Origin: Tubulanus polymorphus
Lineage: Eukaryota; Animalia; Nemertea
Direction of reading: 5' to 3'
DNA: 64,000 nucleotides
Assembly (NCBI RefSeq): GCF_964204645.1
Contig: NC_134036.1
Location: 4,060,600 to 4,124,599 of the forward strand
Shown here: positions 14,301-45,700 of the stretch, piece after piece
Layout: each line of letters opens with the position of its first letter
Position numbering within the stretch: the stretch's first letter is position 1
Notes under the pieces: generated by a model
The model's database searches: none
Told to the model about the DNA's origin: nothing
What the model saw: only the letters and a program-made list of their open reading frames with translations
Made by a program: the position numbers and the translations under genes

Positions 14301-17300
14301 GGTCTTACTGTTGATTAACTTATTAATTTGAACAGAAATATGAAAGATGTTACTGAGGGTCTTACTGTTGATTACTGATTAATTTGAGCAGAAATATGAA
14401 AGATGTTACTTAGGGTCTTACTGTTGATTACTGATTGATTTAAACAGAAATATGAAAGATGTTACTGAGGGTCTCACTGTTGATAACTGATTAATTCAAA
14501 CAGAAATATGAAAGATGTTACTGAGGGTCTTACTGTTGATTACTGATTGATTTGAACAGAAATATGAAAGATGTTACTGAGGGTCTTACTGTTGATTACT
14601 GATTAATTTGAACAGAAATATGAAAGATGTTACTGAGGATCTTACTTTTGATTACTGATTAATTTGAGCAGAAATATGAAAGATGTTACCGAGGGTCTCA
14701 CTGTTGATTACTGATTAATTTGAACAGAAATATGAAAGATGTTACCGAGGTTCTCACTGTTGATTACTGATTAGGCCTAATTTAAACATTTTCTTTCATA
14801 TTTCGATGAAACATTACTGAAACAAAAATTCAATTTGTTACTGATAGTACATTTCAGAGGTTGGCAACCCTGTGAATCTTAAGTTTGACGGTCTAGTAAC
14901 TAGGGCCTGTAGACATGTATTAGCTTTAATGCATTCAATAGTGCTACTAATTTATCAGCCGCTGAAGGTAGAAGTCCCGTCGTTCCATTCGCGTTGTTTG
15001 GTTTTTACCGTATACGGCGGTCGTTTCAGGAAATTCTCTACGCTCCTGAAAGACGCCGACAAAACGCTGTACGACGCGGTGCAGATGAGCCTCACGTTCA
15101 AGATGAAGACCGTGTTTCTGCCGACGAACGAAGCGATGAGTAAAATCCCGCCGGCGAAAGATCCGGCAGCCAGTCCTATGAAGAAAGCCGTGAGTATCTT
15201 CCTTACCCATTCAAGCGCGTCTACATTGCATCGCGGTGTAGCCTATTGATGTTACTAGTTTATCTCCATTGAAAGACGGCAGCACCTGTCGAACAAAGTG
15301 AAATATTAGTAACTAGTGATACATCGCAATGCGGTGTAGACACACTATAGCGGTTTTGTCATTAGTTCAGCGAACTGGGATGTTTCTAATTGAAAATGAA
15401 CTACAAACACCTGATATTAGACATTTTATCAGCTCACTTTCAAAAGCTGATCGTCCACACTTCACATGTGTCCATCGAATATCATCGAATTCCCAAAACC
15501 TGATCGTCAACACAACACATGGGCTTAGTACTACAGTACTTAGTACTACTAATACTAGTAGTACTAAGTACTGTAACAGTACTTAGTACTACTAATACTA
15601 GTAGTACTAAGTACTGTAACAGTACTTAGTACTACAGTACTTAGTACATTAGACATTTTATCAGCACACTTTCAAAAACTGATCATTTACACTTCACATG
15701 TGTTCAGTGCTTTCAATTGAAAATGAACTACTGACACCAGACATTACACAGTTTATCAGCACACTTTCAATAATTGATCCTTCACACTTCACATGTGTTC
15801 AGTGCTTCACCTAAGACATTTCTAATCAAAAAAGAAATACAAACACCAGATATTAGACTTGTTATCATCGAATTCCCAAAACCCGATCGTCAACACAACA
15901 CATGGGCTTAGTACTTCACCTGAGACATTTCTAATTGAAAATATATTAAAAACACTAGATATAAGACTTTCACCATCTCCGCAGCAGTCTTTAGTGTAAG
16001 GACCAGCGCGAGCGGTTTAACCTGTCAGTTGCATCGTTGTTTCCGCGATGTTTTTCAGATCGTCGACAGCCATTTCCTGGACGCTCTTTTCTTCGAAAGC
16101 GACCTCGCGCCGAATCAGGAGCTTACGTCGACCAAGCAGAATGCGTGCAAGCCAAAAATTCTCACCGAACCGGACGGCAAATGTACGTATAGAATTTTCC
16201 GTAGTCGAATACCTAAAATGTAAAGATAGATATTTATTCGAAGGTTTAACCCATTAGCGCTCAAGCCGCCTGGCCCGTTATCCCTCAAGCCGCTGCACAA
16301 AAATGGTTACAGCGGGATTTGAACCCAATAGCTTCGGATAAACTAGACATCCAAGATGTCAAAATTCCTATTCGAAATTCTGTATAGTATTTGCAGTATG
16401 AATATGACAGATTTTAGCACTCGCTTATATCTTAAGTAAGTCTGGATGAATTTCTGGGAGGGGGGACTAAATGTCGGGACATCATTGGGCAGGGAATAGT
16501 CGGGGGAAAAGAAAGTCGATTAAAAGTTGTCACCCTGTACTCCGTCGACCCGTAAAATGTTATTTCTTTCTCGGCAGTGCTGGTCGAATGCGGTCTGGTG
16601 ACGGCGCGAATCACGTCCGCGATACTGCTCACGAAAATGGTCGCCGTGTACGAGATCGACCGCCTGTTGAACTACGTTTATGAATCGGCGTACGACCAGA
16701 TTCAAGCTAACAGCAACCTCGGGTAAAACTCTCTCTCTCTTTCGCTGACGTATGCCGTCCTAGGCTGGGATTCAAACCTGTTGACACCGCGGCGCTCTGC
16801 CATTTTCCTACCTCACAGGGATTTGAACAGGGATGCCATCATGAGCTGCCAAATTCCTCCCTAGCTCAGATTCGAACCTGACGTTCCTCCCTCGCAGCGA
16901 TTCAAATCGCATGGCATCGTGAAACTGCCAAAATCCTACCTAGGCAGGGATTCGAACCTGATGACATCATGAGACTGCCACCTTCCCCCCCCGCAGGCGA
17001 TTCGAACCTGATGACATTCCAAGGACATGGCAGAGTCTCGCGAAGCCTGCCATGTCCTTAAAATGCCCCGAACGATGCTCAGTGGGCTGAGGGGAAAACG
17101 AAACCTCAAATCTATACCAAAAGTACCCTGAGTGGCACTGTTAAATAGAGGGCAAGAATAAACCTCAAACCTGCTGAGTGAATTGACGGGGGGAAAGAAA
17201 CCCAAGATCTAATAATTATTTCCTCGGCGGGTTTACGGAAAAGTTACCCATTCAAAGAAACTTGAACTTTATAGAATCTGTAAATTTTTGTTGCAGTGAA

Positions 17301-20300
17301 TTCAAGAAGCTGCTCTCGAGAGTAACGGGAGACACGACGATCAGGGCCATGTTGGAGAGCGGCCAACAAACGACGGTTTTCGCGCCGATAAACAGCGCGT
17401 TCATCGGCGTCGACCTGAATCAACAGGCTGATCTGGTCAAGGTAAGCAGATTCGCAGTAAGCGGGTGAAAAAAATCGAAGTACTGGTATTCGTTTCCCGA
17501 GTTCGATTTAAACTCTTTTCTTTTCGAAGAGAAATTTAAGCTCCTTTAGTTTCTTTCGGTAAGAATCTAGAACTCGCTTGAAGAGAAATTTAAATGCTCT
17601 TAGTTTCTGAGAGAAATTGAAACACGTTTATATTCTAAGAGTAATTAGAACTCTTCCGATCGAGAAGAGTTTCTGTATAAAAAATCACTGAACCTTTCAG
17701 TGCATTTACACCGCAGTGCGAAGTATGAATCAGTGATGGATGTTGCTAGTGCATCGCATCGCGGCGTCTTGATGTTATTAGCAATTAGTTTTTATATCTA
17801 ATAAAAGATGGCAGCACCTGTCGAACGCAGTTATATATTAGTTACTAACGATACATAGGAAACACCGTTTTTTTCTTGCGCAATCCGTATCAAACTACTC
17901 TTCTTTTGCTCATCCGCAAATTTGTGCACCGCAGTACGATTCACGGGCAGGGTGTGGGCGTGACGGGCAGGTTGTGCGCGTGACGGAGAGGTCGTGGGCG
18001 TCACGAGCAGGGCGTGACGGTCACGGGAGGGTGCGTGGGGATGGTGGCTTTCATTTCAAAAGCACGATGCGCGGACCTTTTCGATGATGGCACCGTTTCT
18101 AATGTCAACACAACACGCGGTTCTTAATTCGGGAGGTTAGTATTCGACACGATTCGTCCTTTTTACCTCATCAACCGCGGGTTACAGAATTCCTTCCTCT
18201 CGGCGGGGCGCCGAATTGTGATTCAAACCTCTGATGGCATCGCGAGATATAAAAGAAAAAAGCCCTACTTCAGACTCTTGTACTGTGGTACTCTGTCTGT
18301 TTTGTACTCTTGTACTGGATGAAATTGATCATAACTCCTTGTATACTACAGAACACTCCTCTCAAGTCGAATCAAAGACTTGAAAGTGATATCCTTGTTT
18401 GACAACACTTGACTCCGCTTGAGTCAGTTCTCGTTGATCTTTTGACTTGGGAGTGATATCAGAGTTGGATGATACAGTAGACTCCGCTATAGTCTGATCT
18501 TTTGACTTGGGAGTGATATCAGAGTTGGATGATACAGTAGACTCCGCTATAGTCTGATCTTTTGACTTGGGAGTGATATCAGAGTTGGATGATACAGTAG
18601 ACTCCGCTATAGTCTGATCTTTTGACTTGGGAGTGATATCAGAGTTGGATGATACAGTAGACTCCGCTATAGTCTGATCTTTTGACTTGGGAGTGATATC
18701 TGAGTTGGTCGGTAGGCCTACAGCATTTTTTCGACTAGAAATCATCAACATGAGAACAGCAAAATTCGTGACGCTTTGCCGTGCACGGGGTTGACTTTGT
18801 TGGGGGTTTGTTACGTCGGTAGTCAGGCGATGCCATCCGGTTCGAATCTCTGCCAGGGAGGATGGTCTCGTGTTTTTTTGTTGTTGTTCCGTAGTCCACG
18901 TTACGGATCGAAGCCCTGATTTGTTGTCCTCGTTTATTTTGATTTCCGTCCTCGCTTATTTCAGTTTTGATTTTAGTTGTAGAGAGCAGTTTTTTTATTT
19001 TGTCTCCTCCGAATTAGAAAGTTGGTCGCGGCGATTTTTGACGAAACCCCAGCCTCAGTAGATGTCCCATTTTCCATCCCGGTGACCGGGACCTGATTGC
19101 ATCGGAAGACTCTGCCCTGCCCTTATAGATATCTTCCCTGGCGATGTCATCACGTTCAAATTCCCGATTCAGAGGGAAGTCTCGTGATACCATCGGGTTT
19201 GAATCCCTGCTGCGAGGGAGGAACATGGCAGTCAAATGATGCCATCAGGTTCGAATCCCTGCAAAGGAGGAACGTGATAGAGTCTGGTGAAGCCATCGGG
19301 TTCGAATCCCTGCGAGGGAGGAACGTGATAGAGTCTCGCGATGCCATCAGGTTCGAATCCCTGCGAGGAAAGAGTCACGCGGCAGAGTCTGGCAACGTCA
19401 TCAGGTTCGAACTCTTGATTCGGATCCCTGCAACGAACATATAGATGTAAATAAGACTCAAGAGTAGCTAATGATACAGAATCGGCGACGAATTTTTCGA
19501 CTCGTCTGTGTGTTGTTCGTAGAGGGTTTCATTTTTTAAACGTCTTATTTTTACCGGGGTGTTGAGAACATGTTGAAAATATGATATCAGCGTTGCGTAC
19601 AGTACCGAGTCGACGCGTGTGTTTTCGTTACAAAACGATGGGTGTCGGTTATTTTATCGAGCGTAGTTTTAAAAAACCATCATGTAGGAGGGAGAAGAAG
19701 GTTTTTTGTTTTCGTTTTACGTTTTCCAGGTGATAGTAACTTGCTCATGATATTCAGCCCAGCCAGTGTAACAGCAGGGTGACAACTGACCGCTGGGGAG
19801 TTGTCGGTACATCTGCCAGAGAAGATATTGATTTGGGAACATTGCTCTCTAACGTGGGAAATTTTTTGAAAATTGTCCGGGAATACAGGACTAGTAGGGG
19901 CTAAAGTTGTCACCCTGGTATACACCACCAGTTTACCGTTCGCGAGCTTTGATAGTCACAAATATTATTCTCGAAATCAGAATGATTTCTAGTATTCTAG
20001 TTCATTTTCGATTAAACTACAGTTTTTTTTCGTCGTCAAATTGTGATGAAAACCACTACGTAAGTAGATACGCCAATATAAACGGGCGTTCGCTTTTTTT
20101 TTCCAGATCGTAAAATGTCAAATTCACAGCACGAATTCGTACAGCGTCGCGAACCTGAAAAGCTTGGTTTCGTCCGGAAACGGTCAACTGCAAACGATGG
20201 ATCCGACCGTCAGTCTGAAAGTGGCCCTGACGGACTCGGGCATGGGTACGTAGGACATAAAAGCTGATATAAAAAACAAAATGATCAGGATTTTTATTTG

Positions 20301-22951
20301 AAATCAGCCTGGCCAAATACTAGGAAAACCTTGTGGGTTTTGATTCATTAGAATCATAGCTATGCTTGAGTAGCTAGCTGGCTAGCTATGTACATAGCCT
20401 AGATCATACACCTTTGATGTCTAGACATAGCTGGTGGCGTACATACTTAATATACACAGGGTCCCTATGACCCTTGATAAACTCATTCAAAACTGCTAGA
20501 ACTCCTTGCATTTGAGCGAAATGCCCAAAACTCCTTCAATTTTGAGAAATTGGCAATTAGATATATTTGTCTAGTTTGCAGGTGTCAACTACACCTGAAT
20601 TGGTACAGTTTAGCTAGTTAAAAGGATAAATAAATGCTCATAAACCACTGTATTAACATTAAACTGTACCGATTTAGGAGGAGTCTACAGCAATCGGCGT
20701 AGAAATATGAAATTCCCTGCAATATGAAATTTCTCATTTAAAACTCCCTGAGAAAAATGAACGATCTGTAGCAACCCTGCGTATATCAGTCGCACGCAGT
20801 ACTGGTACATACATACATCATCGATGTTATTACGCTCTGTTACAGGCGTGACGCTGCAGAAAGGAGCCAGTCCACCGGTGTTGGTCAGCACCGGCGACTA
20901 CGGCGTCACGACCGGTTTCGTACACCACACGAACGGATTGTTCTGCGCGGCGAAACACACCATCATGGTCATCCTCGAGTCGCACCAAAACATAAAGTAA
21001 GTGTCGTCGAGATCGGTCCTTCTCATAATTATGGTCTTCACCTGAGATATATCGTTTTTAGATCAGAAATGAACTGTACTGCCAATCTTGGTGATAACCT
21101 TGACACTATATCAATATTATGAGATATATATATATATATATATACACACATACAATCCAGCGACAAAGAAACCAATTCAAGCAATCAAAGATGATACAAA
21201 CTAAAGGAAAATAAACGTAGATTAACTTTAATTCGGTATCATCTTTGATTACTTGAATTAGTTTCTTTGTCTCTGGATTGTATATCTCATAATTTCTGTT
21301 GGAATTCATTATTCCTGAAGATGACTATCAGGAGATAGTCGAAACGTTGAATAATCGACTAGCTTCAGTTACGTTTTCGCACTGTTTCTTCGTTATTATT
21401 GTGGGATTCTCTCGACTTATACTATTATATCATCGTGAATTCAAGAACAAATTGATTCTTGGGCTCAAAAGTAAGACGTACTCAGTTGATCTTACTCGAC
21501 CCGTGGTCCTTTATTTTTCTGATTTTTTCTCCGACAGCGTGTTCGTCGGTCTGCTGAAAGCCGTCGGTCTCGACGCGATGTTACAGAACGACACGGCCAG
21601 CACGTACAACGTGTTCGCGTTGCCGAACGAACGCATCGCCACGCTGAATCAGCAACTAGCCGCGAACCTTAAACTGAGCACGAAAAATCTCGAGACGACG
21701 AAAGAGGTACGTGAGGAGGGACTGTTTGATCGTCTATCAGCTGAACCTGATAGATGACACTGCTGCGTTCCTCCCTTGGCAGGGATTCGGACCAGATCGC
21801 ATGGTGAGACTGCCACATTCCTCCCTAACAGAGATTTGAACCTGATGGCTTGGTAAGACTATCATGCTCCTATCTCACAAGGATTTGATCCTGATGGCAT
21901 TGTGAAACTCTCCCTCGTTGGGATTTGAACCTGATGGCGTCGTGAGACTCTGCCACGTTCCTCCCTCGCAGGGATTCGAACCTGATGGCATCGCGAGACT
22001 CTGCCACATTCCTCCCTTGCAGGGATTCGAACCTGATGACATTGCGAGACTATCATGCTCCTCCCTCACAAGGATTTGATCGTGATGGCATCACAAGACC
22101 CTGCCATGATCCTCCCTAGCAGGGATTTGATCCTGATGGCATTGTGAGACTCAGCCACGTTCCTCCCTCGCAGGGATTCGAACCTGATGACATTGCGAGA
22201 CTATGCTCCTCCCTCATCAACCCGATGGCTTGTGATGGCATCGCTAGACTTCTGATCGCTTTTTTTTCGCCGTTGTTTTTTCCAGTATTTGCGCTCGTTC
22301 ATCGTGAAAGGTCCGAAGATCAACCTGGCGTGCAACAATTCGCCGTTCAACGCCGTTAACGGTTATAAGATCACGATTTCGTGTTCGAAAGAATTCGGTA
22401 AGGGTGTTTTTTCGAAGCCGACTCAAATAACCGGCCCGTGTCAAACAATCCGAGCAGTCCTACCGTCAAACTGTCGAACTGCGCGTTAGATCCAATGTCA
22501 TCTGGTGGATCCTCGTTTGCCACAAGGGTTCATCCGTCTATTGCTGCAGTAGACTTACTACACACTAGCAACACCCTCGTCATTAGATTTATTTTAGATA
22601 TTTTTAAAAATTTGTCTTTGCCAATAAATTTTTTCCAGATGGCACATTCGAAATTTGAAATCTTTCCTCGCTTGCCAGCGGGGGATTGTCTTTTCTTCCA
22701 TTCGTACTATACGTATCTGATTCTGTTTTTCAGGCGCTACGATTTATAACTACAACGTGAAGAATACCGCGACGCCGTTCGAACGCCTAAACGACAGCGA
22801 CGCCCCGAACGGTCGAGTGTTCATACTCGCCGGGAGGCTGCCGAAAATCGGCAAGATGACCAGCGCGGCGCGGTCGACGACGCGGGCCACCTCGACGACG
22901 ATCGCAGCTTCGGTCGTTATGATTCTCGCGGCTAAATTCGTGATCAGTTAG
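1966..22951 (+). CDS. Fasciclin-1-like cell adhesion protein: signal peptide, four FAS1 domains, GPI-anchor-type C-terminus, 618 aa
   Basis: 13 GT-AG exons join in one open frame (1857 nt including stop): 1966-2079, 11925-12075, 12873-12967, 13867-14000, 15030-15189, 16059-16182, 16578-16722, 17297-17441, 20107-20245, 20846-20996, 21538-21706, 22286-22397, 22734-22951. Signal peptide: MDLFGSVLLLMSVMLMTATVTG-QQ. FAS1 H1 motifs: FVVPTNQA, TVFLPTNEAM, TVFAPINSAF, NVFALPNE. H2 motifs: AFVVDAVM, VYEIDRLL, GFVHHTNGL, NGRVFIL. The hydrophobic tail IAASVVMILAAKFVIS* has no cytoplasmic domain. Confidence 0.9.
6950..7280 (+). repeat. ~51-bp B-box minisatellite array
   Basis: Same unit as 21740-22250, on the plus strand. 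Confidence 0.9.
8794..8960. mobile_element. MITE family A, second copy
   Basis: Reverse complement of 263-429, with the same TIRs. Confidence 0.75.
11435..11695. repeat. 60-bp minisatellite family
   Basis: Unit TCATAATTTTACTGAATCGTTGAAGTTATTGAGAATGAGAAGGTCGTCGTTAGTAACTAA. Also at 30195-30480 and, inverted, at 35140-35620. Confidence 0.9.
12177..12668. mobile_element. MITE family C with an internal ~120-bp triplication
   Basis: Termini AGTGCGTCTACAC.GCAGTGCG and CGCACTG...TGTAG..GCACT. Shorter copies lie at about 8132-8320, 15214-15347, 17698-17855 and 24247-24308. Confidence 0.65.
13054..13306 (-). mobile_element. tRNA-derived CORE-type SINE with an L2-like tail
   Basis: Head with A box (GGCGAAGTGG) and B box (GGTTCGAACCC), CORE-like GTGTCCTCGCGCAAGACACT...CACTCCACCCAGGAGTAAAT, tail TGTAAAGCGCTCTGAG ending in short (TAT)n repeats. 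Confidence 0.8.
14142..14773. repeat. 56-bp minisatellite, about 11 copies (fasciclin intron 4), preceded by about 3 copies of a 30-bp unit
   Basis: Unit TGATTAATTTGAACAGAAATATGAAAGATGTTACTGAGGGTCTTACTGTTGATTAC. The 30-bp unit TGACCCGTACAGCTCCCATCTGGTTTATGG spans 14064-14146. Confidence 0.95.
15370..15970. repeat. Abundant ~110-bp dispersed/tandem repeat, here interrupted by AGTACT-rich palindromic repeats (15525-15650)
   Basis: Unit TTGAAAATGAACTACAAACACCAGACATTAGACATTTTATCAGCACACTTTCAAAAACTGATCGTCCACACTTCACATGTGTTCAG.ACTTCACCTGAGACATTT. Other copies lie at about 4750-4925, 7930-8060, 10450-10770, 29310-29570, 31860-32110, 32800-32930, 36525-36690, 42540-42920, 55150-55310, 57550-57790 and 58770-58935, in both orientations. 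Confidence 0.9.
18410..18710. repeat. 60-bp tandem repeat, about 5 near-perfect copies
   Basis: Unit ACTCCGCTATAGTCTGATCTTTTGACTTGGGAGTGATATCAGAGTTGGATGATACAGTAG. A related degenerate array in opposite orientation lies at about 47870-48440. Confidence 0.95.
19100..19440 (+). repeat. ~51-bp B-box minisatellite array
   Basis: Same unit as 21740-22250, on the plus strand. Confidence 0.9.
21308..21355 (+). ncRNA. Minimal type I hammerhead ribozyme motif (Penelope-like-element type), intact
   Basis: ATTATTC-CTGAAGA-T-GACTATC-agga-GATAGTC-GAAA-CG-TT-GAATAAT: 7-bp stem I, full CUGANGA and GAAA core, 7-bp stem II, palindromic ACGU in place of stem III, GUU cleavage triplet. Confidence 0.8.
21740..22250 (-). 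repeat. ~51-bp B-box-containing minisatellite (largest array of a dispersed family)
   Basis: Unit ATGCCATCAGGTTCGAATCCCTGCGAGGGAGGAACGTGGCAGAGTCTCGCG. Other arrays or single copies lie at about 6950-7280, 13725-13790, 16765-17055, 19100-19440, 41750-41870 and 46355-46420. Confidence 0.9.
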
Positions 22952-24726
22952 AGGGATGAAATAGGGATTTCTCGTTTTTTTTTTTAATCGTCGCGCAGTT
23001 GTAAGAACGTTTTATGATGATCGCGCGTGTCGAATATTGCTCGAAAGTCGTTCAGAACCAAAGGACGGTATTCCCCGGGGGTGGGGGGGCAGATCTAGGA
23101 AAATTGGCTGAAGAAAAGAAAATGTATTTTTCGGATAAAGCAGGCATGTTGAAGGCCACTAGCCGGATCCCACCCTCGGTGTTAAAATATTTTTGAAGAA
23201 ATCTGGCTACAAGATGCTAATTCCTAAAGGATGAGCATCAAAATTTTCAAATTATTTCAATTCTTCGAAGACTATAGTTCACAACCGGGGAATCGGATCC
23301 CAAATTTTAGAATCGAACAACTTTCGAGCAACCCTGACACGTGCTGTTAACGCGAAACAACCGCAGTCTCGAGATGCGAGATCGCGCGTACAAACTACAG
23401 TCGAACACGCCCAGATTTCTTTAGTTTAAGTAAGATTTGAATTATGTTAACGTGGTTCCAGGTTGAATGGATCGAATATTTCATCCAAATCAAGTGAGAA
23501 AGCCGGATTGAAAAATGTTAATTCGAAGCGAGTTCTACTGTATAAGGAAGATTCTCGAGTCATTTCTTTAGCGACGCATCTCATTTCAAACAGCTGAAAA
23601 CAAAAGTGATATTTTACGCGCGAAATGTATGCAACTGCAACAACTAACCCGTAGAAGGAATTAGAATTTTTTTTCAAGACAACTGAGATAGAAAACTGCT
23701 TTGTATAGAGGTGCATACATGTATCGTATCTGATTCTTGTTGTATGTCAAAAATGTCGAAAATTACGCTCACCAACTTCAGGTAGAACATGGCTTACATG
23801 ATGCCTTATACATCTTCTAGCGCAACTAAGTGAGTTTTGTGATGGAAACTAGGATGAAGGGGAGATCCGTAAGGTATTTCAAAACTAAATAGAGCTCATA
23901 TCCGTTGTCGTCCGTCAAAAATCATTTAATTGTAAAATTGTGTGAATTATAAATTTTGCGAAGGCATAGTACACGTCTACTGCGCCTGAATCTGGCTGCC
24001 GCGCATCAGCAGTTCAGGGCTGGATCCAGGCTGTAAGAAAGGGGTTCACCTTATAGGGCACTTAATAGTCGTGGCCAAAGGGGGTCCTGCCCCAGAACAT
24101 TTTGAAAAAGTTTAGGTACATTTTAATGCAATCTGAGTTCATAGAACTCATTTAACCCTTTCAGTGCTGACTAATTAATACCCTTTAGTGCTGGAGATTT
24201 AAAAAAATTCCACCTTAGTGTGTTAAATAACGGCAATACCACTATAGTGCGTCTACACCGCGGCACGGTGTATCATTAGTTGCTAGTACATTACTATGTT
24301 TGACAGGTGTTTCGTGAGCAGTTCGCTGAAATTCGAAGAAACGTTCAGGACACGAATACACGACAAACGACGTCAAGCTGTCGCCGGCGAAAATCGATTT
24401 TAAATTTCCAATTTCGAGCGATTAATCATCGTTCGAGTATTGTCCGCGTCGATGGCAGCGTCTTGTGACAATAGTGTATCCGTCATCATGAGCGGTGTCT
24501 CTATCTGTTGTCTGTTACATCGACTCCAAGCTGTTGGATTATCGAAGAAAATCATGTATTTGAAATTAGGCTGAAAAACGTCGATACCTCGTTTCTCAAT
24601 TTTCTGCCGAGCTTAAAAAAATGGTGACCCGGTCGGCTGCCTATCTACCCTGTACATTACTTTTCAGAAAATCATGATCAAGCTATCAATAACAGACCCG
24701 ACAACTATTAGGGGGTGTGTACAGAC

Positions 24727-25020
24727 CAGGGGCGAATCCAGGGGCATGTTGGGACCATGTCGACCAATAAAAAGGGCATATATTGTTAATTTAGGGCCGA
24801 AGGCATATCAGCATAATTTTTGAAATTTTACTATCAATTTAGAGTTTTCTGAGCATCTCTGAGAGGCATTTATAGTCAAGAAACAAAGGTTATATATTTA
24901 TGAAAAATATCTATTGTGTATCTCGGGTGGTTACAACGGCAAATTTTGATACACAGAAAAAATAAAAAGGCAATTCTGACCATGTCGACATGGTCGACTC
25001 TGTCTAAATCCGCCCCTGCA
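24727..25020. mobile_element. MITE nested in an older dispersed repeat
   Basis: Termini CAGGGGCGAATCCAG and CTAAATCCGCCCCTG. The host sequence on either side (about 24590-24710 and 25090-25200) occurs uninterrupted at about 37010-37200. Confidence 0.55.
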
Positions 25021-25611
25021 GACAGCAGGTTCGATAGCTGCATAAAGGTCTACTCAGTACATTACTTTTAAAATACCACCATCGGGCAAAACAATAACAG
25101 ACCTAGCAGCTATAAATAAATGAACTGATTACAAATTTTATTGCGGTTTACTCAAATGCCCCGGCCGATTAGGAGAAACAAGGTATCATTCGTTTAGCCT
25201 TACTTAAGACTTTTCAAAAAAGCTCTCAATGAAATAGTAGGCATGTTATACAGCTGTTTTCGCGGAAAGCTAGCGCGATTTCCTAGTAAATTATCCGTCC
25301 TTAACGTTATTAGAAATTGCCAAATCATCGGTGAACTTAAAAGAAAAAACAAAACTTAAAGTTAAAGAAAAGGTAAACCTAAGCATTCCATCCATATCCC
25401 GGGATATTCGTTTTGCTCATTTTGTAGATGGTTCTGTATTGCCAACTTTTCGATACTGATCGAATCAGTTAATCATCGATTTAAAAACGTTATATCCGTG
25501 TTGTGTGACGATAATGTGGTAGAGAATCCCACAATAATAACGAGAAAAATAATATAAGGTCCGGAAATGTTTCCTGGGGCTCTAGTAGTTTGTTCGACGT
25601 TTCGACTATAT

Positions 25612-25745
<134 letters not shown>

Positions 25746-25756
25746 TCATATTCTTG

Positions 25757-26445
25757 CTTGAAGATGACTACATGTACTAGGATATAGTCGAAACTTAGTT
25801 CATTCAACGTTTCGACTATATTCTAATAGTCATCTTCAGGAATACTGAAGATATATTCCAGAAGATGACTATTGAAATATAGTCGAAACTTAGTTCATTC
25901 AGCGTTTCGACTATATTCTAATAGTCATCTTCAGGAATACCGAAGATGTATTCCAGAAGATGACTATTGAAATATAGTCGAAACTTAGTTCATTCAACGT
26001 TTCGACCATATTCTAATAGTCATCTTCAGGAATACCGAAGATGTATTCCGGAAGATGACTATTGAAATATAGTCGAAACTTAGTTCATTCAACGTTTCGA
26101 CCATATTCTAATAGTCATCTTCAGGAATACTGAAGATGTATTCCAGAAGATGACTGTTGAAATATACTCGAAACTTAGTTCATTCAACGTTTCGACCATA
26201 TTCTAATAGTCATCTTCAGGAATACTGAAGATATATTCCAGAAGATGACTATTGAAATATACTCGAAACTTAGTTCATTCAACGTTTCGACTATATTCTA
26301 ATAGTCATCTTCAGGAATACCGAAGATGTATTCCAGAAGATGACTATTGAAATATAGTCGAAACTTAGTTCATTCAACGTATTGATTATATTCTGATAGT
26401 CGTACAGTACAATACGGTATTCCATATTCCTGAAGATGACTATGA
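25757..26445. repeat. 95-bp tandem array (about 7 units); each unit is an inverted repeat of two hammerhead ribozyme motifs
   Basis: CATTCA(A/G)CGT recurs at 25801, 25896, 25991, 26086, 26181, 26276 and 26371. Each unit is a 36-nt arm, a 14-nt loop, a 36-nt reverse-complement arm and a 9-nt spacer. Confidence 0.95.
25801..26319 (-). ncRNA. Tandem minimal type I hammerhead motifs (5 intact cores, 1 with U16.1>C)
   Basis: Each unit reads TATTC-CTGAAGA-T-GACTAT-tagaat-AT(A/G)GTC-GAAA-CG-TT-GAATG on the minus strand, at 25844-25801 and every 95 bp after. The unit at 25896 has GAAACGCT. The A>G variant in stem II keeps a G-U pair. Confidence 0.75.
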
Positions 26446-27459
26446 TTTCCCGATTAGAATTTAGTCGTAACGTTGAATGAAGTCGGTAAACTATTTTTCT
26501 CGGTTTTGTGTCAATAGTTAAGAGCGCCCAATTCTGAAACCGATCGCGCCAGTTGTTTAGATTATTATCGGAAAACGTTCCTCCCAAAACTTACGGGTTA
26601 TGATGTAGTTTGTTGAATGTACAAAAAAAACCGTGTTTTGTTAATAATCAAAACCTAGAATATATTTTCCGACCAGCACCGCAGTAGGAGCACAACCTAC
26701 CTGCCCCCTCATCATGAGCACTTACAATATTAGGCTATAATTTGGAGTAATCGGGCTGATGTATTGACTTTATTTTCGGTACGTCATTTCAAAGTCACCG
26801 GTATATTACGTATAGGCTGGCTAAATTGTTATCAATCTGTTGCCTGGAGCCGGCACCCTTTCAGGCGCCGGTATTCTTCCAATTTTCGCGATCGCGCCCA
26901 AGCTTCGCAAATGTGAATATTAGAAATTTCATTGGCACATTTTCGAAAAGCGATTGTTTGTCCGTGCTATGCACGTGTCTGGAACAACTTCATTTCAAAA
27001 GGGAAATAAACCGACATTTTCGAAAAGGTCAGAAACATCAGCTATTAGCAATCGGTAAACTTTCGCTTAAGACTTCGCGCTACAATGTTTGGCGGATATC
27101 TGGAAAGTTCTAGGTTCCCGAATGCGGGTTGATACCTACATTAGGGTTGAATAAAGCGGATCGAATTGCGGCGTTCGATTCTAGAATTTGGGGATGAGTT
27201 TTTAGCGAGGTTTCGTCGTTGATGTACGTTGTGTATTGAGATGTTATTTGTTATTCGTGGAGTAGTTTTTGTCGTACATATATTCATTATTTACAAACGC
27301 TTTTCTAGTGGTTCGGGTAAAAGATATTTAGCAAAGGGTCGGCATATAACTAACTACACGCTCGGGTGTAGTCTCGGTGTTTTAATTGATGTAAAAATCA
27401 TCGGCACTCTGTTCGATAGTCGAGAATTCCATAGTTGAGACTGTCATAGTCGAGGGTCC

Positions 27460-27875
27460 TGAGTCGACAAACTGGATATGAACGCAATATCGAACCTCGA
27501 TCCAGAGTTGAATTGAACCCACGCAACTGTGGAACTCGGGAACCAGGGTCACATTAAATTCGCGAGACTGCGGAACTGGATCCAGAGTCGAACTAAACCC
27601 GCACAACTGAAGATAACTTTTAGCATACCCGTGCAACCGTCGAAGTCAAAGTAAACCCACACAACTGTGTAACTGGTTTCAGAGTTAAAATCAGCCCACA
27701 CAACTGCGGTACTGGATCGAGAGTCAAATTCAGCCCACACAACTGTGGTTCCGTAGCCAGATTAAAACTACACAACTGTGTATCTTCGTCCAGAGTCAGA
27801 TTAAACCCAGATAACTGTGTACCTTGGTCCAGAGTCAAATTAAACCGAGAAAACTGGAACCGGATCCTGAAAAGC
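27460..27875. repeat. ~40-bp degenerate minisatellite
   Basis: Recurrent TTAAACCCACACAACTGTGGAACTGGATCCAGAGTCA. An inverted array lies at 5620-5845. Confidence 0.8.
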
Positions 27876-27944
27876 TATGGAATTAACCAACTATGGAACA
27901 GGAGTCAAGTGTGTGATATATCTTCTGAACATTCCAAAACGTCT

Positions 27945-28075
27945 GGGACCAGTTGTTCAAAAGTTGGTTAGAATTAACCAGTGGATAGTTGATGTAGTGA
28001 CAATAAAAAGTTCATTGTTACTATGGTATTTATCCGGCCGTCGTTTATCTTTAACCAACTTTTGAGCAACTGAAG
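27945..28075. mobile_element. MITE family B, second copy
   Basis: Near reverse complement of 444-574. Confidence 0.7.
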
Positions 28076-28278
28076 CCCCTGGATATTTTCTGAAGACGGT
28101 TTCTGGATATTTTCTGCAGGCGGTTTCTGGTGGCGATGAAACTATTTTGTTTGTGTACGGCGTCGTATGGAAAACCATTTTCTAACTTCGTTGTGTGAAT
28201 TTTGCCGTGTTGTCGTCGTCATGTAAACTACGTTACTTATTACATATATTATCTTCCATCATCATCATCATCATCTGC

Positions 28279-28309
<31 letters not shown>

Positions 28310-30675
28310 GATGATATCGCGCGTTTTTTAAAAAGGTTATTTATATTTATTACGAGAACGATTTTTGAAGGAAAAATAGTAACCAAGATCTCCACATATA
28401 ATGTGACGTATACGATATACATTCCGCGATCCGTCGCTGTTCGTATTCCAACCGTCGTCGTTTCCGTCGGTTCACTGCATACATACGCGTAGATTAACTA
28501 TTTCCATGCGGTAGACTCCGCCTTACTCTGCTGCAGCAGCGTCTCGGGACTGTGAATGTTTCGCCGAGTTCAGAATGCGGGGTCGTGCGCAGTTGTGAAT
28601 CGAGTCCGAAAGAGTGGCCTCGAGTGAAGTAAAAGTATATAGTCGTACGACTTCGATCTCTCGAACCTAAGCAATCGGTCCCGAGGAAAATAGAAAAGTT
28701 TTTTGAGATGAATGTTTTTTGTTTGAATACAATGCGGAATACCTGAAAGTGGATTAGCCACACACTAACATGGCGAATAGATGATACGATTACATGTTTT
28801 TAATCTTTGAAGTTTTGTGTTAAAACCACCGTGTTTACTGGTAAGCAGGAGTCTACCGTATCGTAAAAGCGGCTTGGCTTCTTTCGTAAAAACCGCAGGT
28901 GCGTTTACTTCACGCATGCTTCGAAATATATCCAATCTTGTTGTGATGTTCTTTATAATGGAACATTCGTATGGATTTAGGAATTATTTAGAAATTATTC
29001 CCCGAATATCTGCACGATATTTTCGCGTTTACGCGTGCCTACTTTTTTCCGTCGATTTAATGTGATCTTCAATATTCGTCCATATTCGTATAGTTAGTAT
29101 GCGTCGTTGTTTCTTCTGTCCAGCCATAATAATGTTTAATCGTCGTTTCACCGTTTTACAACAGAGATTGCGCTCATTGCACTGTTATCTATCTGCAGTC
29201 TGGAGGTTGCGCTGCCTCAGACATTGGATATATCATTACCGGTTACCAATTCATCATCGTCCAGGTTTTGAATGATTGGTTTCTCGCCTTTATTCAAGGC
29301 AACATTGAAGAAAATGAACTCCAAGCACCAGACATTTTCAGCACACTTTCAAAAACTGATCGTCCACACTTCGCGTGTGTTCAGAACTTCACCCGAGACA
29401 TTTTCAATTGAAAATGAACTACAGACACCAGGCATTAGACATTTTATCAGCACACTTTCAAAAACTGATCGTCCACACTTCGCATGTGTTCGGGACTTCC
29501 CTCAGAGACATTTTGTTTCGAAAATGGGCCTATGAAATATTGAATGTCTGGCGTTCGTAGTTCATTTTTCAAATTGGTCTAGTTTTGCAATAAATATTTG
29601 AAAAATATCTCGCAAGATTTTGAACGATCAAAAATAAGTATCGAATATCTGGGGAGGGCATGTAGTCCGGGCTGCAGACGATCTACAAGCACCAATATGA
29701 AACCTTTCAGAACCGTTTATCTGCCATTACAGTTATCATTATCGAGGATTACATTATCATTTATATCATTATATTTATTACACGTACATATTATGTTATC
29801 ATATTATTAATATTATTATTATTATTATTATTATTATTTACATATCAAAGATCGTAAACGGATATGTAGAATCCTTATGCATATTAAATAGATGGATTAA
29901 CAAAAAGATAGATTTGTACATGCATAGTGAATGATAATGATTATAGTTAATTATTATAATTATAATCATTATCGGGATTATTATTAATGTTTGATATATA
30001 ACGATGTGCTCTTTGTTGTGGACTTTTACATTATTTTTGAAAAAAATTGATCTTCATATTAAATCTATAAATATACATACGTGAATACATTCTTATGTAT
30101 GATTATATATCATTCGGATATAAAGCTTGGATTTTTACACGAAAAAGCTTTTCGTTTTGTTATTTCTTTTATTTCTCTGTTTCATTGCGAAATGTTGAAT
30201 CACGATTTTACTGAATCGTTGAAGTTATTGAGAATGAGAAGGCCGTCATTAGTAACTACATTAATCACGATTTTACTGAGTCGTTGAAGTTATTGAGAAT
30301 GAAAAGGTCGTCGTTAGTAACTAATCATAATTTTACTGAATCGTTGAAATCATTGAGAATGAGAAGGTCGTCGTTAGTAACTAATCATAATTTTGCTGAA
30401 TCGTTGAAGTTATTGAGAATGAGAGGCCGCCATTTTACTGAATCGTCGAAATGATTGAGAACGAGAAGGTCGTTAAGTCTTAATATTATGTACATCTTAA
30501 AGTTAATCGAAATTTGTTGAAAAACGCATGCAAATGCACTTTGAAATGATGTATACAAAATGACTCTGCCTATGCATGTTAGAATTGACCTTAACTTGAC
30601 TGGAGAGCAGCGCTATCATAATTAAACCTCGCTATCGTTTTAATAATTTGAATGATTATTCCGTGAATTTTATAG

Positions 30676-33300
30676 ATCGTCAAGAACCACATCGTCTCGG
30701 GCATATTGACTAACGTAGGCATGAATAAAGGTTTCGCGGCGCAAACAATGGCGAAGACGGCCCTGAAAATAACAGTCGCTGATAACCGTACGTATTGTCG
30801 ATCACGATTGGTAGAACACTATATCCGTGTTGACGCGATGAGGAGAGAATCCCACAATGATAAAAATTATTATCATTGTGGGATTCTCTCCTCACGTATT
30901 GTCGATATACTGAATTAAGAAACCATAGAAATCCGAATGCATGTGTATTTGATATTGACGCAGCCTGGAACCTGCACCCCTTCAGACGTTCAATGATATA
31001 ATGATTGTGTAGTGTGGGGAATCTTTCTTTACGATCTGTTTGAAGGTGTTCTGATGTGTTCTGTGAAAAAGTCTTCAATGTCCGGAGTATGTTGTTCATT
31101 TCAATTAAGCCATCCTGAACACTGGTGAGATTTTGGCGATCGAAAACTAGAGAATGTCTGAATGGACCCAGTGGCGGACGCAGTGGCCAATTTTAAAGGA
31201 CTTGTTGCATCCCAAAAGGGCACTCGTCGAAAAAAGGAATATTAAGCGTATTCCTGCGCACTGAAATGCTCCAATATTATCATCGTTGACAAAATGAAAT
31301 GAGCACTCAAAAAATCTTGATGGACCTGTACAAGTCTACGAAGTCCCTCTGGATCCGCCCCAACCCGACTATACTGGGAGTGTGCCTAGATTCCCTCCAT
31401 CCCTGTCTCTGCTTTTGCCTCGCCGTCTCCTCATCTTAAAACTGTTCGTTCTTTGATTAAATTGCAGATCGGTTTATAACGGCCGGTGGCGGGCGTGGCC
31501 GGATCTTAGCGAAGGAGGAACGGGTCTCTACGGGAGTAGTGCATATGATCGACGGCCTTCTCGGCGTCAAAATGAAAACCATCATGGAGCTCATCCATGA
31601 AAACCCGAAATTGACGTAAGTGCTCTTTTAATAGTGCGGTAGATTTTGATAAGCCTAATTTGTGAAATTTCCTTCGTGATACCGGTGGAGACCGTTAGCT
31701 ACACACGGCTTGAATTGGTCGGACCAGGGAAATGTAATGATCACTACACTTTCCTGGTCTGACCTTTTGTGGAAGGGTTAGTAATACTGAACCATAATTC
31801 AGGTGACGAGAGCTTTTGATATTCATCATGAAGACTTTGCAGAGCGGATAACTTCATGGAGGTGTTCTCATAAAATATCTAATGTCTGGTGTTAGCAGCT
31901 CTTTTTCAATTGAAAATGTGTCTCCGGTGAAGCACAGAACACATGTGAAGTTTGGCCGATCAGTTTTTGGGTTTTTGAAACTACACTGATAAAATATCTC
32001 ATGTCTGGTTGTTGTAGTTCATTCTCATCTCGGGTGAAGCCTTAGGCACATAATATGATGAATAGAGCACGGTCAGTTCTTGAGAGTGCGCTGTTAAAAA
32101 AGTGTCTGATATAATAACCTTTTTCTATTCGAACATTTCAGAAAGTTCAACATGGAATTGATTCGCGCCGGACTCGATAAGATGCTGGATAAGAAGACCC
32201 CCGGGACCCTCTTCACCGTGTTCGCCGTCTCCAACGACGCGTTCGAAGCTCTGGTCACTCACCCGGCCGGATGGGGTTTGTTCTCTTTGAGGAACAGAGA
32301 GAAGATGAAAAAGGTAACTACATTCATAGTATTAATCAAGGCAATATCGTTAGTTTTTAATATAATCTAGAAATATATTGATTTGGTTCGCTTTTATAGA
32401 GATAATTGTCGTTTGTTTGTGGTTTTATTTGAGGATTTTTTAAGATGTTTTCAACACTCCAAATGGAAACAGTAAAATTCGTTGTTTTTAATCGTCTGTT
32501 CCGTAGTTCATCGAGAACCTGATCGTGCCCAATCACGACATCGACGTGCCGCGAGTTTTCAACAAACCTGCCGTCGTCAAATTCGAGACGGTCGCTGGTA
32601 GAAATATGACTTTGTCGTACACGTTCAAGGATGCGAGTAAGTTATCGATAGAGTCTTTCCATACAGTTTCAGTCACTTCTATATCGTCGGTCTACGCGCA
32701 TGTATCATCAATCCGTGTTGCTCAGATCCGACCCTTAGACATCCGAGGCTCTATCGCCATTCTCCTAGTTTGCTACAAGATCAGGCTCGGATATAGTGTC
32801 CAGTGCTTCATCCGAGACTTTTTCGATTGAAACTGAACTACAAGCACCGGACATTAGACGTTTTATCAGCTCACTTTTAGAATCTGATCGTCTACACTTC
32901 ACGTGTGTTCAGTGCTTCGCCTGAAACTTTAGCTAATCGAATATAAACTCGAAGAATGGTGATAAAGTATGGAATATCTCAAGGCTATAGGTTTGATGCT
33001 TGCGATTGCTTGAAATAGTGTATATACCTATATCTATTTTTATCTATATCGGAAGGATACTCACCGCTGCCGCTAAATTCTTCTCTCGTTTCGTTTGTTC
33101 TTTCAGAGATGCTCTACCGCCTGGACACGTTCGACGTACCGCTCGCGCTCGACAACATCCTGAACCTGTCGCGACAACGCGCTTTCAACGGCGCCCTGTA
33201 TGTGTTGCCTAGGGGTCCGTTCACCGGCGCCGCCACCGCCCTCTACTGCTCGTTCGCCACCTTGGCTCTGTCGTTGGCCACCGCCTTCGCTTTGCTGTAA
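30676..33300 (+). CDS. Second FAS1 exon block (about 1.7 FAS1 domains plus GPI-type tail); alternative 3' half of the upstream fasciclin gene, or a 5'-truncated paralog
   Basis: 5 in-frame GT-AG exons: 30676-30787 (IVKNHIVSG...), 31468-31615 (...STGVVHMIDGLLG...), 32142-32313 (...FTVFAVSNDAF...), 32507-32636 and 33107-33300 (...FNGALYVL...YCSFATLALSLATAFALL*). Entry phase 0, then phases 1, 2, 0, 1, identical to exons 9-13 of the upstream gene. Confidence 0.85.
30839..30894. repeat. Perfect 25-bp inverted repeat; internally deleted copy of the hammerhead-element flank
   Basis: TGAGGAGAGAATCCCACAATGATAA-aaatta-TTATCATTGTGGGATTCTCTCCTCA. The arm matches AGAGAATCCCACAATAATAA near 25521 and its complement near 21393-21413. 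Confidence 0.8.
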
Positions 33301-42700: not shown

Positions 42701-45700
42701 CTCAGGTGAAGCACTGAACACATGTGAAGTGTGGATGATCAGTTTTTGAAAGCGCGCTGATGGAATGTCTAATGTCTGGCGTTTGCGATTTATTTTTGAT
42801 TAGAAATGTCTCAGGTGAAGTTCTGAACACAAGCGAAGTGTGGACCCAGTTTTTGAAAGTGTGCTGATAGAATGTCTAATGCCTGGTGTTTATAAATAGT
42901 TCATTTTCGATTGAACGTGTCCAACGTGAAGTTCCGAACTTACCTTTCGAATCGTACACATTTCGCGACGGACTAATCGTCGCCTGTGCGCAGGTTTGCG
43001 TGTACATCCGGCAGGTGATCGTTTCGAAGTCGAATGTGAATGTCGTACAAGGCGAGCCCTTCATTTCCAGGCAAGATCTGTAACATTTCATCAGACAAGT
43101 ATCCATTAGCACAGCGTACGGCGTCAGTTGTTCACAGTCGCAATGGTTCCTGTAAAAGACGTCGCTTTTCGGCCCTGCAAAAACCACAGTTGGTATTAGA
43201 TATGCAGGCGTTTTTTTTAAGGAAATGTTTCGTCTTCTCTGTTAATCGGATTTACGTGTTAAACGATATTTTTCTTGTCTATAAGTTACTTCGGCAACGC
43301 AAACTCGGGTATGATTTCTATATTATAAAACAAGCTATTGCGTCTATTCTACTCGCTGCTCTACCGCTATAGCTGTGAGGAGAGCAGGTTCGCCGAGAAC
43401 CTATTGCGTCTGTTCTACTCGCTGCTCTCCCGCTACAGCTGCGAGGAGAGCGGGTTCACCGAGAACCTAACGCGTCTGTTCTACTCGCTGCTCTACCGCT
43501 ACAGCTGTGAGGAGAGGGGGTTCACCGAAAACCTATTGTCTATTGCATCTGTTCTGTACTCGCTGCTCTACTTATCAAGTTTACGTCTTTTTCTAAGTGC
43601 TAAGAACTGTACAACTAAGAACTAATCTATCGACAGAAAAAGTAATTAATACGTACTTTTCTTAGAGTACACGGTTTTCTTGATCCCAACTAGTGGAGAA
43701 TGTGTTGGGTACGCCCCGTGCAGTACGCACTGTCCCAATGACTGGTACGTGTAGGCCGTGCAGTTTAACATCCGTTGACAGGCCAGGGCGCAGTCCGAGT
43801 GCGTCAACGATAAGCTGGCGATCGCCGTATCGTTAGAAAACCACCGATCGATGTATCGATTATATAATCTCATTACACAAGTTCCTTAAACAAAAATTTA
43901 AAAAATGCAAAGAATTGTTTGCAGCTTTATCTTTTTTTTGCAACAGATATTCGAGCTTGATTTAAGGGAATCAGAGCTTGATTTGAGGGAATCAATATGG
44001 ACATTGCCACCAGTTGCATACGATATGTCGATGATGATGATGATGATGATGATGAAACAGGCACCCAAGGGGGGATGGGGTATACGGGTGTAGCGAACGA
44101 ACCCCCTAATATTTCAAGGCGCCCGTAATAAGGCGTCACAGTGTCTAAACATTCGGGCCACTATTTTTCGAAATTTGGATATAGTGTTCAGGTTTTGAGG
44201 AAAGGGTAAACCTGTAAGGGGTCATTGGTCATCGGGATCTATCTCAATTTGGTATGTACATTATATAGAAATTTACGAAGTCAAAAAGTCATTTAGAATG
44301 TAAGTGCGATTACCCTGCATGTATTCGTAGGTATAGACAACCGGGTCGTCGGTTGTCACATCCGATTTCTGACACGTGGCGTTGTGCGCCCAACAGATCG
44401 ACTGTTCTTCGTTGCACGATACGGTTTGAACCGTCGCCGAACCGAAGTCGTTCAGTGCCAGCGACTGGGCGTAGCCGGCGTAAGTATCATCGTACGCTTT
44501 TATCACCGGGAGATCCGGCTGGCACGCCCCGTGAGTGACGGAGAACTGTCCCGCCTTGTTCTCTGAAACAAGATGAAGTCGTTTATTAAAAGTGAATCTA
44601 TTTCAGGCAAAAATCCTATCGTGTTTACATACACGCTGCTTGCCCGCTACAGCTGTGAGGAGAGGGGGTTCACTGAGAACCAATTGCGTCTGTTCTACTC
44701 GCTGCTCTCCCGCTACAGCTGTGAGGAGAGGGGGTTCACCGAGAACCTATCGCGTCTGTTCTACTCGCTGCTAATACTACTGCAGTGGGGTTTGTAAGGG
44801 ACACCGTATCAATAGAAATCAAACGAAATCCACCAATGAAATAAATAACAGGGCCGATCCCTATTTTCAGAGATCAAAAATACTACTATGCCAAACCAAT
44901 ATATGGGCTCTATTCCTGTCGCCCGTATGCAAACGGAAATGCTTGAACTAATGTTAGAACGTAATGTCAGAATGTGATGGATTTCCGAAATATCAAAACA
45001 TACCGTTTTTGACAAGCATCTTCCGTCGACGCGCGCGAAGAACGCCCTCGATTATAGCGGTTGCCAATAATTTTGTCGGTCATAAAAAATATCGGTTATA
45101 CGAAATGCAGGAAACAATTTTAATGGCAACGCATTTTGATGGTATAGGCGGTGGTTAATGCGCTTTTCAGTTTCCCGGCTCTTACTGATTGTCATCGACG
45201 TCTCCTCGAGGTTGAGGTTCGGCTGAACGTAATTCTAAATCTAGTTTTTCTACGCAGAAAATGCAAATACGCTAATACGTATGCGTAGTATTTCAGCTCG
45301 TTTAGTGGCGAACTCTTAAAGTAGTTAGCCCGAACAAAACCGGGTATTAATGTATTACGATAATATGTAGAGAATTCCGCAATGAGAACGAAAGAAACAC
45401 ATTTTAAGTAAGAAAACGTTTCCGTGACCTGGCAGTTTATTAGACGTTTCGACTATATTCTCATAGTCATCTCCAGGAAATACTGAAGATTTTGAATTCG
45501 GACTTTTTATTTTTTATTTTTTCGTTATTATCGTGTCACAACACGTAAATATAGTGTTCTATCAGTGGTGAGAGTTTTATGCATTCTCAATATAAAAGCA
45601 CTCAGATTTTAAAATCAAACCCTTTTTAGACAGTTGGGAATGTTTCTTAGATACGGTAGATATAGTTCATAGTCGTAGCCTAATTGACTAGCATTGAGCA

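Follow-up and report, generated by a model that had tools for sequence, protein, structure and literature searches.

The window, a 64,000-nucleotide stretch of contig NC_134036.1 from the Tubulanus polymorphus genome, contains a tandem array in which a 95-bp unit is repeated 6.5 times with 96% matches (Tandem Repeats Finder [TRF] score 1121). The mean divergence among the interior units is 3.4%, and the edge units are degenerate. The array lies between two outer arms that are alike at only 58 of 85 positions, and an (AT)64 run is found directly upstream of it. The left arm stops within the 3′ half of a hammerhead, where it is interrupted by this (AT)n run. A fasciclin gene around the array could not be confirmed, as ten ORFs gave no Pfam match and PF02469 was not found on the contig. 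The sequencing runs that contain the locus look like DNA, with even coverage of the non-coding DNA beside the (AT)n repeat and no starts or ends. The features of the locus are collected in Table 1.

Table 1. Features in and around the 95-bp array, in window coordinates (R1, covariance model described in the text; L050 and L054, other copies in the same genome)
Feature	Position	Strand	Evidence
Outer arm with ~35-nt tail extension, 5′-truncated PLE 3′ end	25476..25615	-	blastn to L054:4317-4480; alignment to solo copy L050
(AT)64 microsatellite, interrupts left arm and first unit	25616..25743	.	TRF period 2, 64 copies, 100%
Degenerate edge unit, plus-sense hammerhead fragment with insertions	25744..25795	+	sequence; blastn; R1 15.5 bits at 25752-25805
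95-bp tandem array, 6.5 units	25782..26401	.	TRF and mapping onto PLE tail L054
Minimal hammerhead motif, unit 1; core intact, predicted cut 25806/25805	25798..25847	-	R1 46.1 bits, E 1.4e-10
Inverted dead copy (CAGAAGA; no helix III or I), complementary "lock" of neighboring minus motif	25854..25900	+	R1 18.7 bits; blastn 25854-25889
Minimal hammerhead motif, unit 2; U16.1 changed to C (GAAACGCU), plus-strand base 25902	25893..25942	-	R1 34.3 bits
Inverted dead copy	25946..25995	+	R1 19.1 bits; blastn
Minimal hammerhead motif, unit 3; core intact, helix II U-G pair	25988..26037	-	R1 38.8 bits
Inverted dead copy (CGGAAGA)	26041..26090	+	R1 18.3 bits; blastn
Minimal hammerhead motif, unit 4; core intact, helix II U-G pair	26083..26132	-	R1 41.3 bits
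Inverted dead copy	26139..26174	+	blastn to L054:4350-4385, 83%; no R1 report at E up to 10
Minimal hammerhead motif, unit 5; core intact, helix II U-G pair	26178..26227	-	R1 41.3 bits
Inverted dead copy	26234..26280	+	R1 11.4 bits; blastn
Minimal hammerhead motif, unit 6; core intact	26273..26322	-	R1 43.6 bits
Inverted dead copy	26326..26375	+	R1 19.1 bits; blastn
Degenerate right edge and right outer arm	26402..26535 (end approximate, maybe ~26571)	+	blastn, R1, alignment to L050

On the minus strand, every full unit reads UAUUC-CUGAAGA-U-GACUAU-(6-nt loop)-AUAGUC-GAAA-CG-U-U and continues with GAAUG. This is the layout of a type I hammerhead with a 5-bp helix I (UAUUC/GAAUG) and a 6-bp helix II (GACUAU/AUAGUC), in which one unpaired U is bulged out after A9, ahead of helix II, and helix III is cut down to A-U around a palindromic CG. 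The core (C3-U4-G5-A6-N7-G8-A9, G12-A13-A14, A15.1, U16.1, and H17) is intact in five of the six units; in unit 2, the change of U16.1 to C breaks it. AUAGUC has become AUGGUC in three units (plus-strand bases 26007, 26102, and 26197), with a U-G pair kept in helix II. Cleavage of the minus strand is predicted between 25806 and 25805 and at the corresponding positions of the other units (+95n). All of this bears out a preliminary description of the stretch, which had reported a 95-bp array with a minimal type I hammerhead on the minus strand of each unit, five intact cores out of six, and a G-U pair preserved in stem II, and which had placed the cut at GUU/GAAUG, with 5′ ends at 25805+95n, the same position that we derive.

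Using three units of the array to search the assembly genome-wide (268 Mb, 77 contigs), we found many relatives, partly in arrays with a period of mostly 69 bp, but also of 52 and 101 bp, and partly as solo copies of ∼220–250 bp; the closest outside DNA matches to the three units are at most 77% identical and have other periods. The outer arm with its tail recurs in more than 40 copies at 99–100% identity, some of which are spaced exactly 2857 bp apart, and a tandem 2857-bp unit is present at two loci (L054 and L055). This unit encodes an 802-aa ORF with an RVT_1 (5.8e-10) and a GIY-YIG (1.5e-5) domain, a pair that is the signature of Penelope-like elements (PLEs) and therefore identifies the element as a PLE. 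A hammerhead motif identical to that of the window lies ∼310 nt past the stop codon of the ORF, and the arm and tail behind it are also those found in the window; a search for a Penelope-type RT/GIY-YIG element with the same motif, which had been suggested earlier, has thus found one. In at least 17 places the genome is 100% identical over a 279-aa query from the C-terminal part of the ORF, with open frames of up to 841 aa, and given these many identical open-frame copies the family looks recently active. The arms of the array are 83–94% identical to the tail of this multicopy element and, judged by these alignments, the window motif is descended from a PLE tail and is not a chance match.

Minimal hammerheads (min-HHRs) are known from the pseudo-LTRs of metazoan PLEs (Cervera and de la Peña, 2014, PMC4209133), and the window motif has all the features listed for them: the type I layout, the CUGANGA/GAAA core, a short helix I (5 bp), a long helix II (6 bp), the A-U/CG helix III, and an origin in the noncoding terminal part of an element with RT and GIY-YIG domains. 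Four further PLE families in the genome, whose C-terminal ORF part is 55–69% identical to that of the element described above (family A), have, beyond the ORF, a motif of the same architecture whose stems differ in sequence. In an alignment of the window units with these five families (a further family, 64% identical and with a longer helix II, was left out), the core positions are invariant, 92.4% of the cells assigned to pairs are paired, compared with 31–45% when the partners are slid, and 9 of the 12 pairs have changed on both sides across the PLE families; the observed covariation score was reached by none of 500 shuffles. The helix III palindromes are all self-complementary, that is, ACGU in the window and in families A–D, AUAU in family E, and ACCGGU in the 101-bp array. 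A UAG at the start of loop 2 is also invariant across the element families.

A covariance model built from families B–E only (R1), which includes sequence from neither the window nor family A, finds all six minus-strand units at 34–46 bits (E about 1e-10 to 4e-7). Together with the covariation, these matches show that the minus-strand motif genuinely belongs to the PLE min-HHRs in sequence and covariation; the earlier assignment of this motif to the Penelope type is upheld by the same scores and by the shared descent with the PLE tail. With the Rfam hammerhead models, neither the window nor the array, a 69-bp array, or the tails of four other PLEs gave a match, even when E values up to 10 were allowed, and the best score in a genome search with Hammerhead_1 (RF00163), in which 73 of ∼34,600 candidates were scored, was 22.4 bits, against a cut-off of 34; the only Rfam matches in the window are generic, sub-threshold ones of the hairpin or miRNA-precursor type. 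Because Rfam also misses the motifs of the other PLE families, its blank result is uninformative for the min-HHR class, which is known to escape standard descriptors (PMC4209133).

The plus strand presents a different picture. Each unit does carry an inverted copy (C[A/G]GAAGA...GAAAC-UU), but U4, helix I, and helix III have been lost from it, and it scores 11–19 bits with R1, compared with 34–46 bits for the minus-strand units. The plus-strand "hammerhead" is thus a dead inverted fragment, and the notion of ambisense hammerheads in the preliminary description is not supported, although its caveat that the plus-strand motif lacks U4 and stem I was correct and can be extended to helix III. The origin of this copy is apparent when the unit is mapped onto the PLE tail at L054, where it runs from 4398 to 4342 (57 nt, antisense on the plus strand), through a 9-nt center, and on from 4350 to 4385 (36 nt, sense on the plus strand), and is therefore a single segment that asymmetrically spans the center of a palindrome, with a whole hammerhead in its 57-nt part and a partial one in its 36-nt part. 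The junction word that marks the breakpoint of the unit has seven matches in the 268-Mb genome, all seven of them inside the array, which speaks against mobility of the unit.

The surroundings of the array have the make-up of an inverted PLE insertion. The left flank (25476–25615) is an antisense arm with its tail, from which it follows that the PLE is read in the sense direction on the minus strand, and the leftmost, degenerate unit already has the GAAAC-TTAG duplication junction. The right edge holds a plus-sense hammerhead copy at 26422–26482 in which loop 2 is enlarged and GAAA has become GUAA (R1, 17.3 bits; 73% blastn identity between 26417–26481 and L054:4341-4395), and a decayed arm follows it. 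We looked for a target-site duplication around the window insertion and could define none because the right arm is too decayed. The solo copies elsewhere in the genome are palindromes that consist of an antisense arm, a short loop, a sense arm, and, on just one side, an extension of 35 nt; their target-site duplications differ in length (e.g., 10 bp at L037 and 13 bp at L045). A usual PLE insertion comprises a 5′-truncated copy, an adjacent inverted 5′-truncated copy, and a 30–40-bp terminal tail on one side (Craig et al., 2021, PMC8557442), and PLE insertions are associated with microsatellites (PMC8557442). The inverted arms, the 35-nt one-end tail, and the variable target-site duplications of the solo copies are shared with these published insertions, and the flanks in the window are such arms. 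Unlike in the published insertions, however, the center of the inverted pair has in the window been tandemly amplified into a satellite of palindromic units, for which we found no description in the literature searched.

Comparison with other arrays in the same genome sets the 95-bp array further apart. The 69-bp arrays (and also those of 52 bp) are built from the same hammerhead segment and the same PLE source and are likewise set between inverted PLE arms, but they are pure head-to-tail arrays of sense units with one junction at many loci and a nearly free hammerhead fold, whereas the 95-bp array alternates in orientation, occupies a single locus, and is locked. The 69-bp multimers lie inside insertions that are bounded by target-site duplications (e.g., of 13 bp at L006). 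An alternating palindromic array with a 101-bp period is found 45 kb away; its flanks are unrelated, and its cores are dead on both strands.

For the monomer delimited by the predicted cuts, the predicted structure is a hairpin of 34 bp that is interrupted by three single mismatches, closes with a 7-nt apical loop, and leaves 14 nucleotides unpaired at the ends; its energy is −43.6 kcal/mol for the linear and −37.9 kcal/mol for the circular molecule. This agrees to within one closing pair with the two 36-nt arms, three mismatches, and 9- and 14-nt linkers described previously, and the rod-like fold of the 95-nt monomer follows trivially from its palindromic origin. When three units of the minus strand are folded in silico as one transcript, helices I and II have a probability of 0.0 at equilibrium. 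The cost of forcing the hammerhead fold is +27 to +29 kcal/mol for the 95-nt array, compared with +3 to +6 kcal/mol for a 69-nt array and +1.2 kcal/mol for the native PLE tail, values that are thermodynamic predictions and ignore proteins, helicases, and dimer formation. When the growing chain is folded in silico, the hairpin is already present when the chain extends just 14 nt into the hammerhead; because the blocking arm lies upstream and is transcribed before the hammerhead, no co-transcriptional (i.e., kinetic) window is to be expected either. On these predictions, with a hammerhead fold that costs 27–29 kcal/mol relative to the rod and a blocking arm that is made first, the release of 95-nt circles proposed in the preliminary description is not supported.

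Selection on the core is not borne out by the variation in the array: of the 13 within-array departures from the consensus, 1 affects the 11 core nucleotides, where 1.5 would be expected (a test with almost no power), such that the core varies as much as the rest. Among the dispersed copies, the core has changed at 5.0% and the stems at 6.2%, which is neutral decay of the kind expected of dead insertions and is not informative on the function of the array. Loop 2, the CpG, and H17 show excess variation in these copies, reflecting subfamily differences.

We consider it probable that the array arose by a DNA-level tandem duplication across the center of a palindromic PLE insertion. In the order of events that we infer, a PLE would have inserted as a back-to-back pair of 5′-truncated tails, in which the hammerhead motif of the tail came to lie near the junction of the two copies; a 95-bp segment over the palindrome center, with 57 nt from one arm and 36 nt from the second, would then have been tandemly duplicated at the DNA level and expanded to ∼7 units by unequal exchange or slippage, with the hammerheads as passengers in the duplication. 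A single tandem duplication and subsequent unequal exchange would account for the entire structure and fit the unique junction, the degenerate edges and the homogeneous interior, the independent 101-bp array, and the contrast with the 69-bp arrays. Local amplification at the junction of a palindromic element had been raised before as a caveat, and it is supported by the mapping of the unit across the palindrome center and by the flanks, which are PLE arms. Since each hammerhead would be preceded by its own reverse complement in a minus-strand transcript, such a transcript would form 34-bp hairpins rather than a ribozyme, and the folding model leads us to expect little or no self-cleavage into 95-nt monomers.

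It should be noted that the interior units are much closer to the intact PLE copies (34–46 bits) than are the edge units and outer arms (15–17 bits), which is at odds with simple neutral decay of an old array. The preserved interior could reflect a younger or nested secondary event or a re-expansion, ectopic conversion from other PLE copies, or constraint; selection may be the cause, with no other observation in its support.

An alternative to DNA-level duplication is that the alternating array was made during retrotransposition, with the PLE reverse transcriptase switching between two cDNA or template strands where the inverted copies meet. We regard this as unlikely: the same two breakpoints would have been needed seven times over, decay has gone much further in the outer arms than in the interior units, and degenerate edges around a homogeneous interior are the usual signature of unequal exchange after insertion. 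Nevertheless, cleavage and extension of both strands of the target have been seen in vitro for a PLE enzyme (PMC11167929), complex tandem and inverted PLE insertions are known (PMC8557442), and the position of the 69-bp multimers within insertions flanked by target-site duplications (13 bp at L006) suggests that multimers can form during insertion itself. Another reading takes the array for a working ultra-small retrozyme, whose minus-strand transcripts would cut themselves at GUU/GAAUG into circularizing, viroid-like rods of 95 nt and whose antisense copy would serve as a regulatory lock. Five intact cores in a genuine motif class and interior units that are unusually well kept relative to the edges are in its favor, as are retrozyme families down to 51 bp in size (preprint 10.64898/2026.07.22.740005). 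A helix III formed between two copies (ACGU), as has been proposed for PLE min-HHRs (PMC4209133), could, moreover, arise in a tandem array, but PLE min-HHRs cleave poorly in vitro even as dimers and even without a lock (PMC4209133), and for a PLE of Anolis no RNA-seq reads ending at the hammerhead site were seen and hammerhead cleavage is not needed for insertion in vitro (PMC11167929). With the hammerhead fold disfavored by 27–29 kcal/mol behind a blocking arm that is made first, a plus-strand copy that cannot be a hammerhead, a core that is unprotected within the array, and a junction whose uniqueness in the genome gives no sign of propagation, we hold a working retrozyme to be very improbable.

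The array might also be a hairpin-RNA locus, at which transcripts of either strand would fold into tandem 34-bp hairpins and be processed to small RNAs against the hammerhead-bearing PLE tail, dampening the element. In animals, endogenous siRNAs are known to arise from inverted transposon repeats. Each unit is predicted to form a very stable hairpin (−43.6 kcal/mol), the sub-threshold Rfam matches are only of the generic hairpin or miRNA-precursor kind, and the arms are 83–94% identical to the tail of an element with many identical open-frame copies. However, this is one 0.6-kb locus among thousands of PLE-derived palindromes and has no evident special status, and we consider such a role to be quite unlikely. 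That the motif is a chance hammerhead-like match in the terminal inverted repeat of a DNA transposon (MITE) or in a plain satellite would accord with the silence of the Rfam hammerhead models, even at E up to 10, and with the resemblance of the dispersed copies to palindromic MITEs of ∼220 bp; yet the location of the motif in the tail of an element with RT and GIY-YIG domains, the one-sided tail, the varying length of the target-site duplications, and the strong covariation across PLE families rule out a chance motif, a MITE, or a DNA transposon for practical purposes. There is a slim chance that the array is transcribed and gives rise to small RNAs against the tail of the active PLE or, more rarely, that some transcripts escape the lock and yield 95-nt circular rods. 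In the former case, the array would be an accidental transposon-derived silencing locus; in the latter, the circles would be among the smallest DNA-encoded hammerhead circles.

Under our preferred reading of a duplicated palindrome center, the array can be compared with several known systems. Opposite-strand PLE min-HHR motifs close to one another have been noted before (PMC4209133), but unlike the min-HHRs of that study, the window copies are located in a secondary 95-bp array derived from the center of an inverted insertion and not in the end repeat of an element. We found no paper in the literature searched that links hammerheads with nemertean PLEs. Classical non-LTR retrozymes are 170–400 nt long, have canonical hammerheads with loop-loop contacts, are present at many loci, and give circular RNAs (PMC7229834), and tandem hammerhead repeats derived from PLE end repeats have been described in families of 51–972 bp (Li et al., 2026, preprint 10.64898/2026.07.22.740005). 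The 95-bp array shares with non-LTR retrozymes the head-to-tail units, each with a type I hammerhead motif; it differs from them in that the unit occurs at one locus, is known here from DNA alone, and has a min-HHR that is blocked by its own inverted copy. With viroid-like RNAs (Avsunviroidae and circular satellite RNAs), the 95-nt unit has in common a rod-like predicted fold in which the hammerhead is sequestered. However, in those RNAs the ribozymes work in both polarities and replication proceeds from RNA to RNA, whereas the 95-bp unit has a core in one polarity only, is chromosomal, and is descended from a retrotransposon, and a reading of the locus as a viroid-like RNA factory is not supported. 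What is particular to the 95-bp array is that the tandem unit is itself a palindrome center, which leaves the ribozyme locked by its own inverted copy.

The apparent viroid-like RNA factory is thereby best explained as a by-product of PLE insertion and palindrome amplification. Beyond this locus, five element families of the Tubulanus polymorphus genome support the PLE minimal hammerhead by clean covariation, and the genome offers a natural comparison set for the question of whether such weak ribozymes are active in vivo at all, in which the hammerhead is free (PLE tail), nearly free (69-nt arrays), or fully locked (95-nt array).

Two further copies derived from Penelope-like elements (PLEs) lie within the window (see table). 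R1, a covariance model built from PLE families B-E without any sequence from the window or from family A (the family whose tail gave rise to the window's 95-bp hammerhead array), assigns its top score in the window, 47.3 bits, to an intact motif at 21307-21356 (+), within the family-A-like insertion.

The first three nucleotides of hammerhead loop 2 are U-A-G without change across the five PLE families (columns 23-25 of the motif alignment A2), in contrast to helices I and II, which covary freely in the same alignment. This trinucleotide lies outside the canonical hammerhead core; it might make a tertiary contact, or it might be recognised by a protein.

Coordinates of hammerhead-related features and neighbouring repeats
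Feature	Location	Strand	Remarks
Second insertion, PLE family-A-like	window 21100-21415		inverted duplicate of region upstream of hammerhead
Solo PLE-tail copy, old	window 45380-45570	-	core mutated to CUGGAGA; R1 24.1 bits
Loop 2 U-A-G, examples	window 26298-26300	-	alignment A2
	L054:4369-4371		alignment A2
69-bp sense arrays	L006:1416-2098; L011:1386-1990		flanked by inverted PLE arms
52-bp array	L005:1410-1928		PLE-tail hammerhead segment
101-bp array	L020:1496-2173 (G000:C12:4041326-4042003)		independent; alternating PLE-tail fragments; ~19 kb ahead of window start
39-bp tandem repeats (two), and short segment of very high contig depth	window 27644-27856; 27955-28164		not PLE-related

The preliminary description had placed a fasciclin gene across the array (window 17297-33300), which we could not confirm: a Pfam search of ten ORFs in this interval gave no matches (0/10), and PF02469 (fasciclin) was absent from the window's contig, with matches on other contigs only. 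Contig depth is very high in 4/4 runs over a short segment listed alongside the two 39-bp repeats, indicating another high-copy repeat; it and the 39-bp repeats are unrelated to the PLE.

Elsewhere in the genome, all units of the 52-bp array carry two core changes (CGGAAGA, and GAAA to AAAA), and an intact ribozyme is evidently not needed for array persistence. In the 101-bp array, one strand has a dead core (CUAAAGA) and the other lacks GAAA, while helix III has changed from ACGU to ACCGGU with the palindrome retained. At L014, repeats of 52-105 bp with TTAGGG runs (L014:2582-2941) adjoin a 69-bp hammerhead array, which suggests a subtelomeric setting for some hammerhead arrays. Because target-site duplications (at L006 13 bp, ATCGATATCTAGA) bound the insertions holding the L006 and L011 69-bp arrays, these multimers were probably inserted in multimeric form, and it is these sense arrays that are the genome's stronger retrozyme-like candidate.
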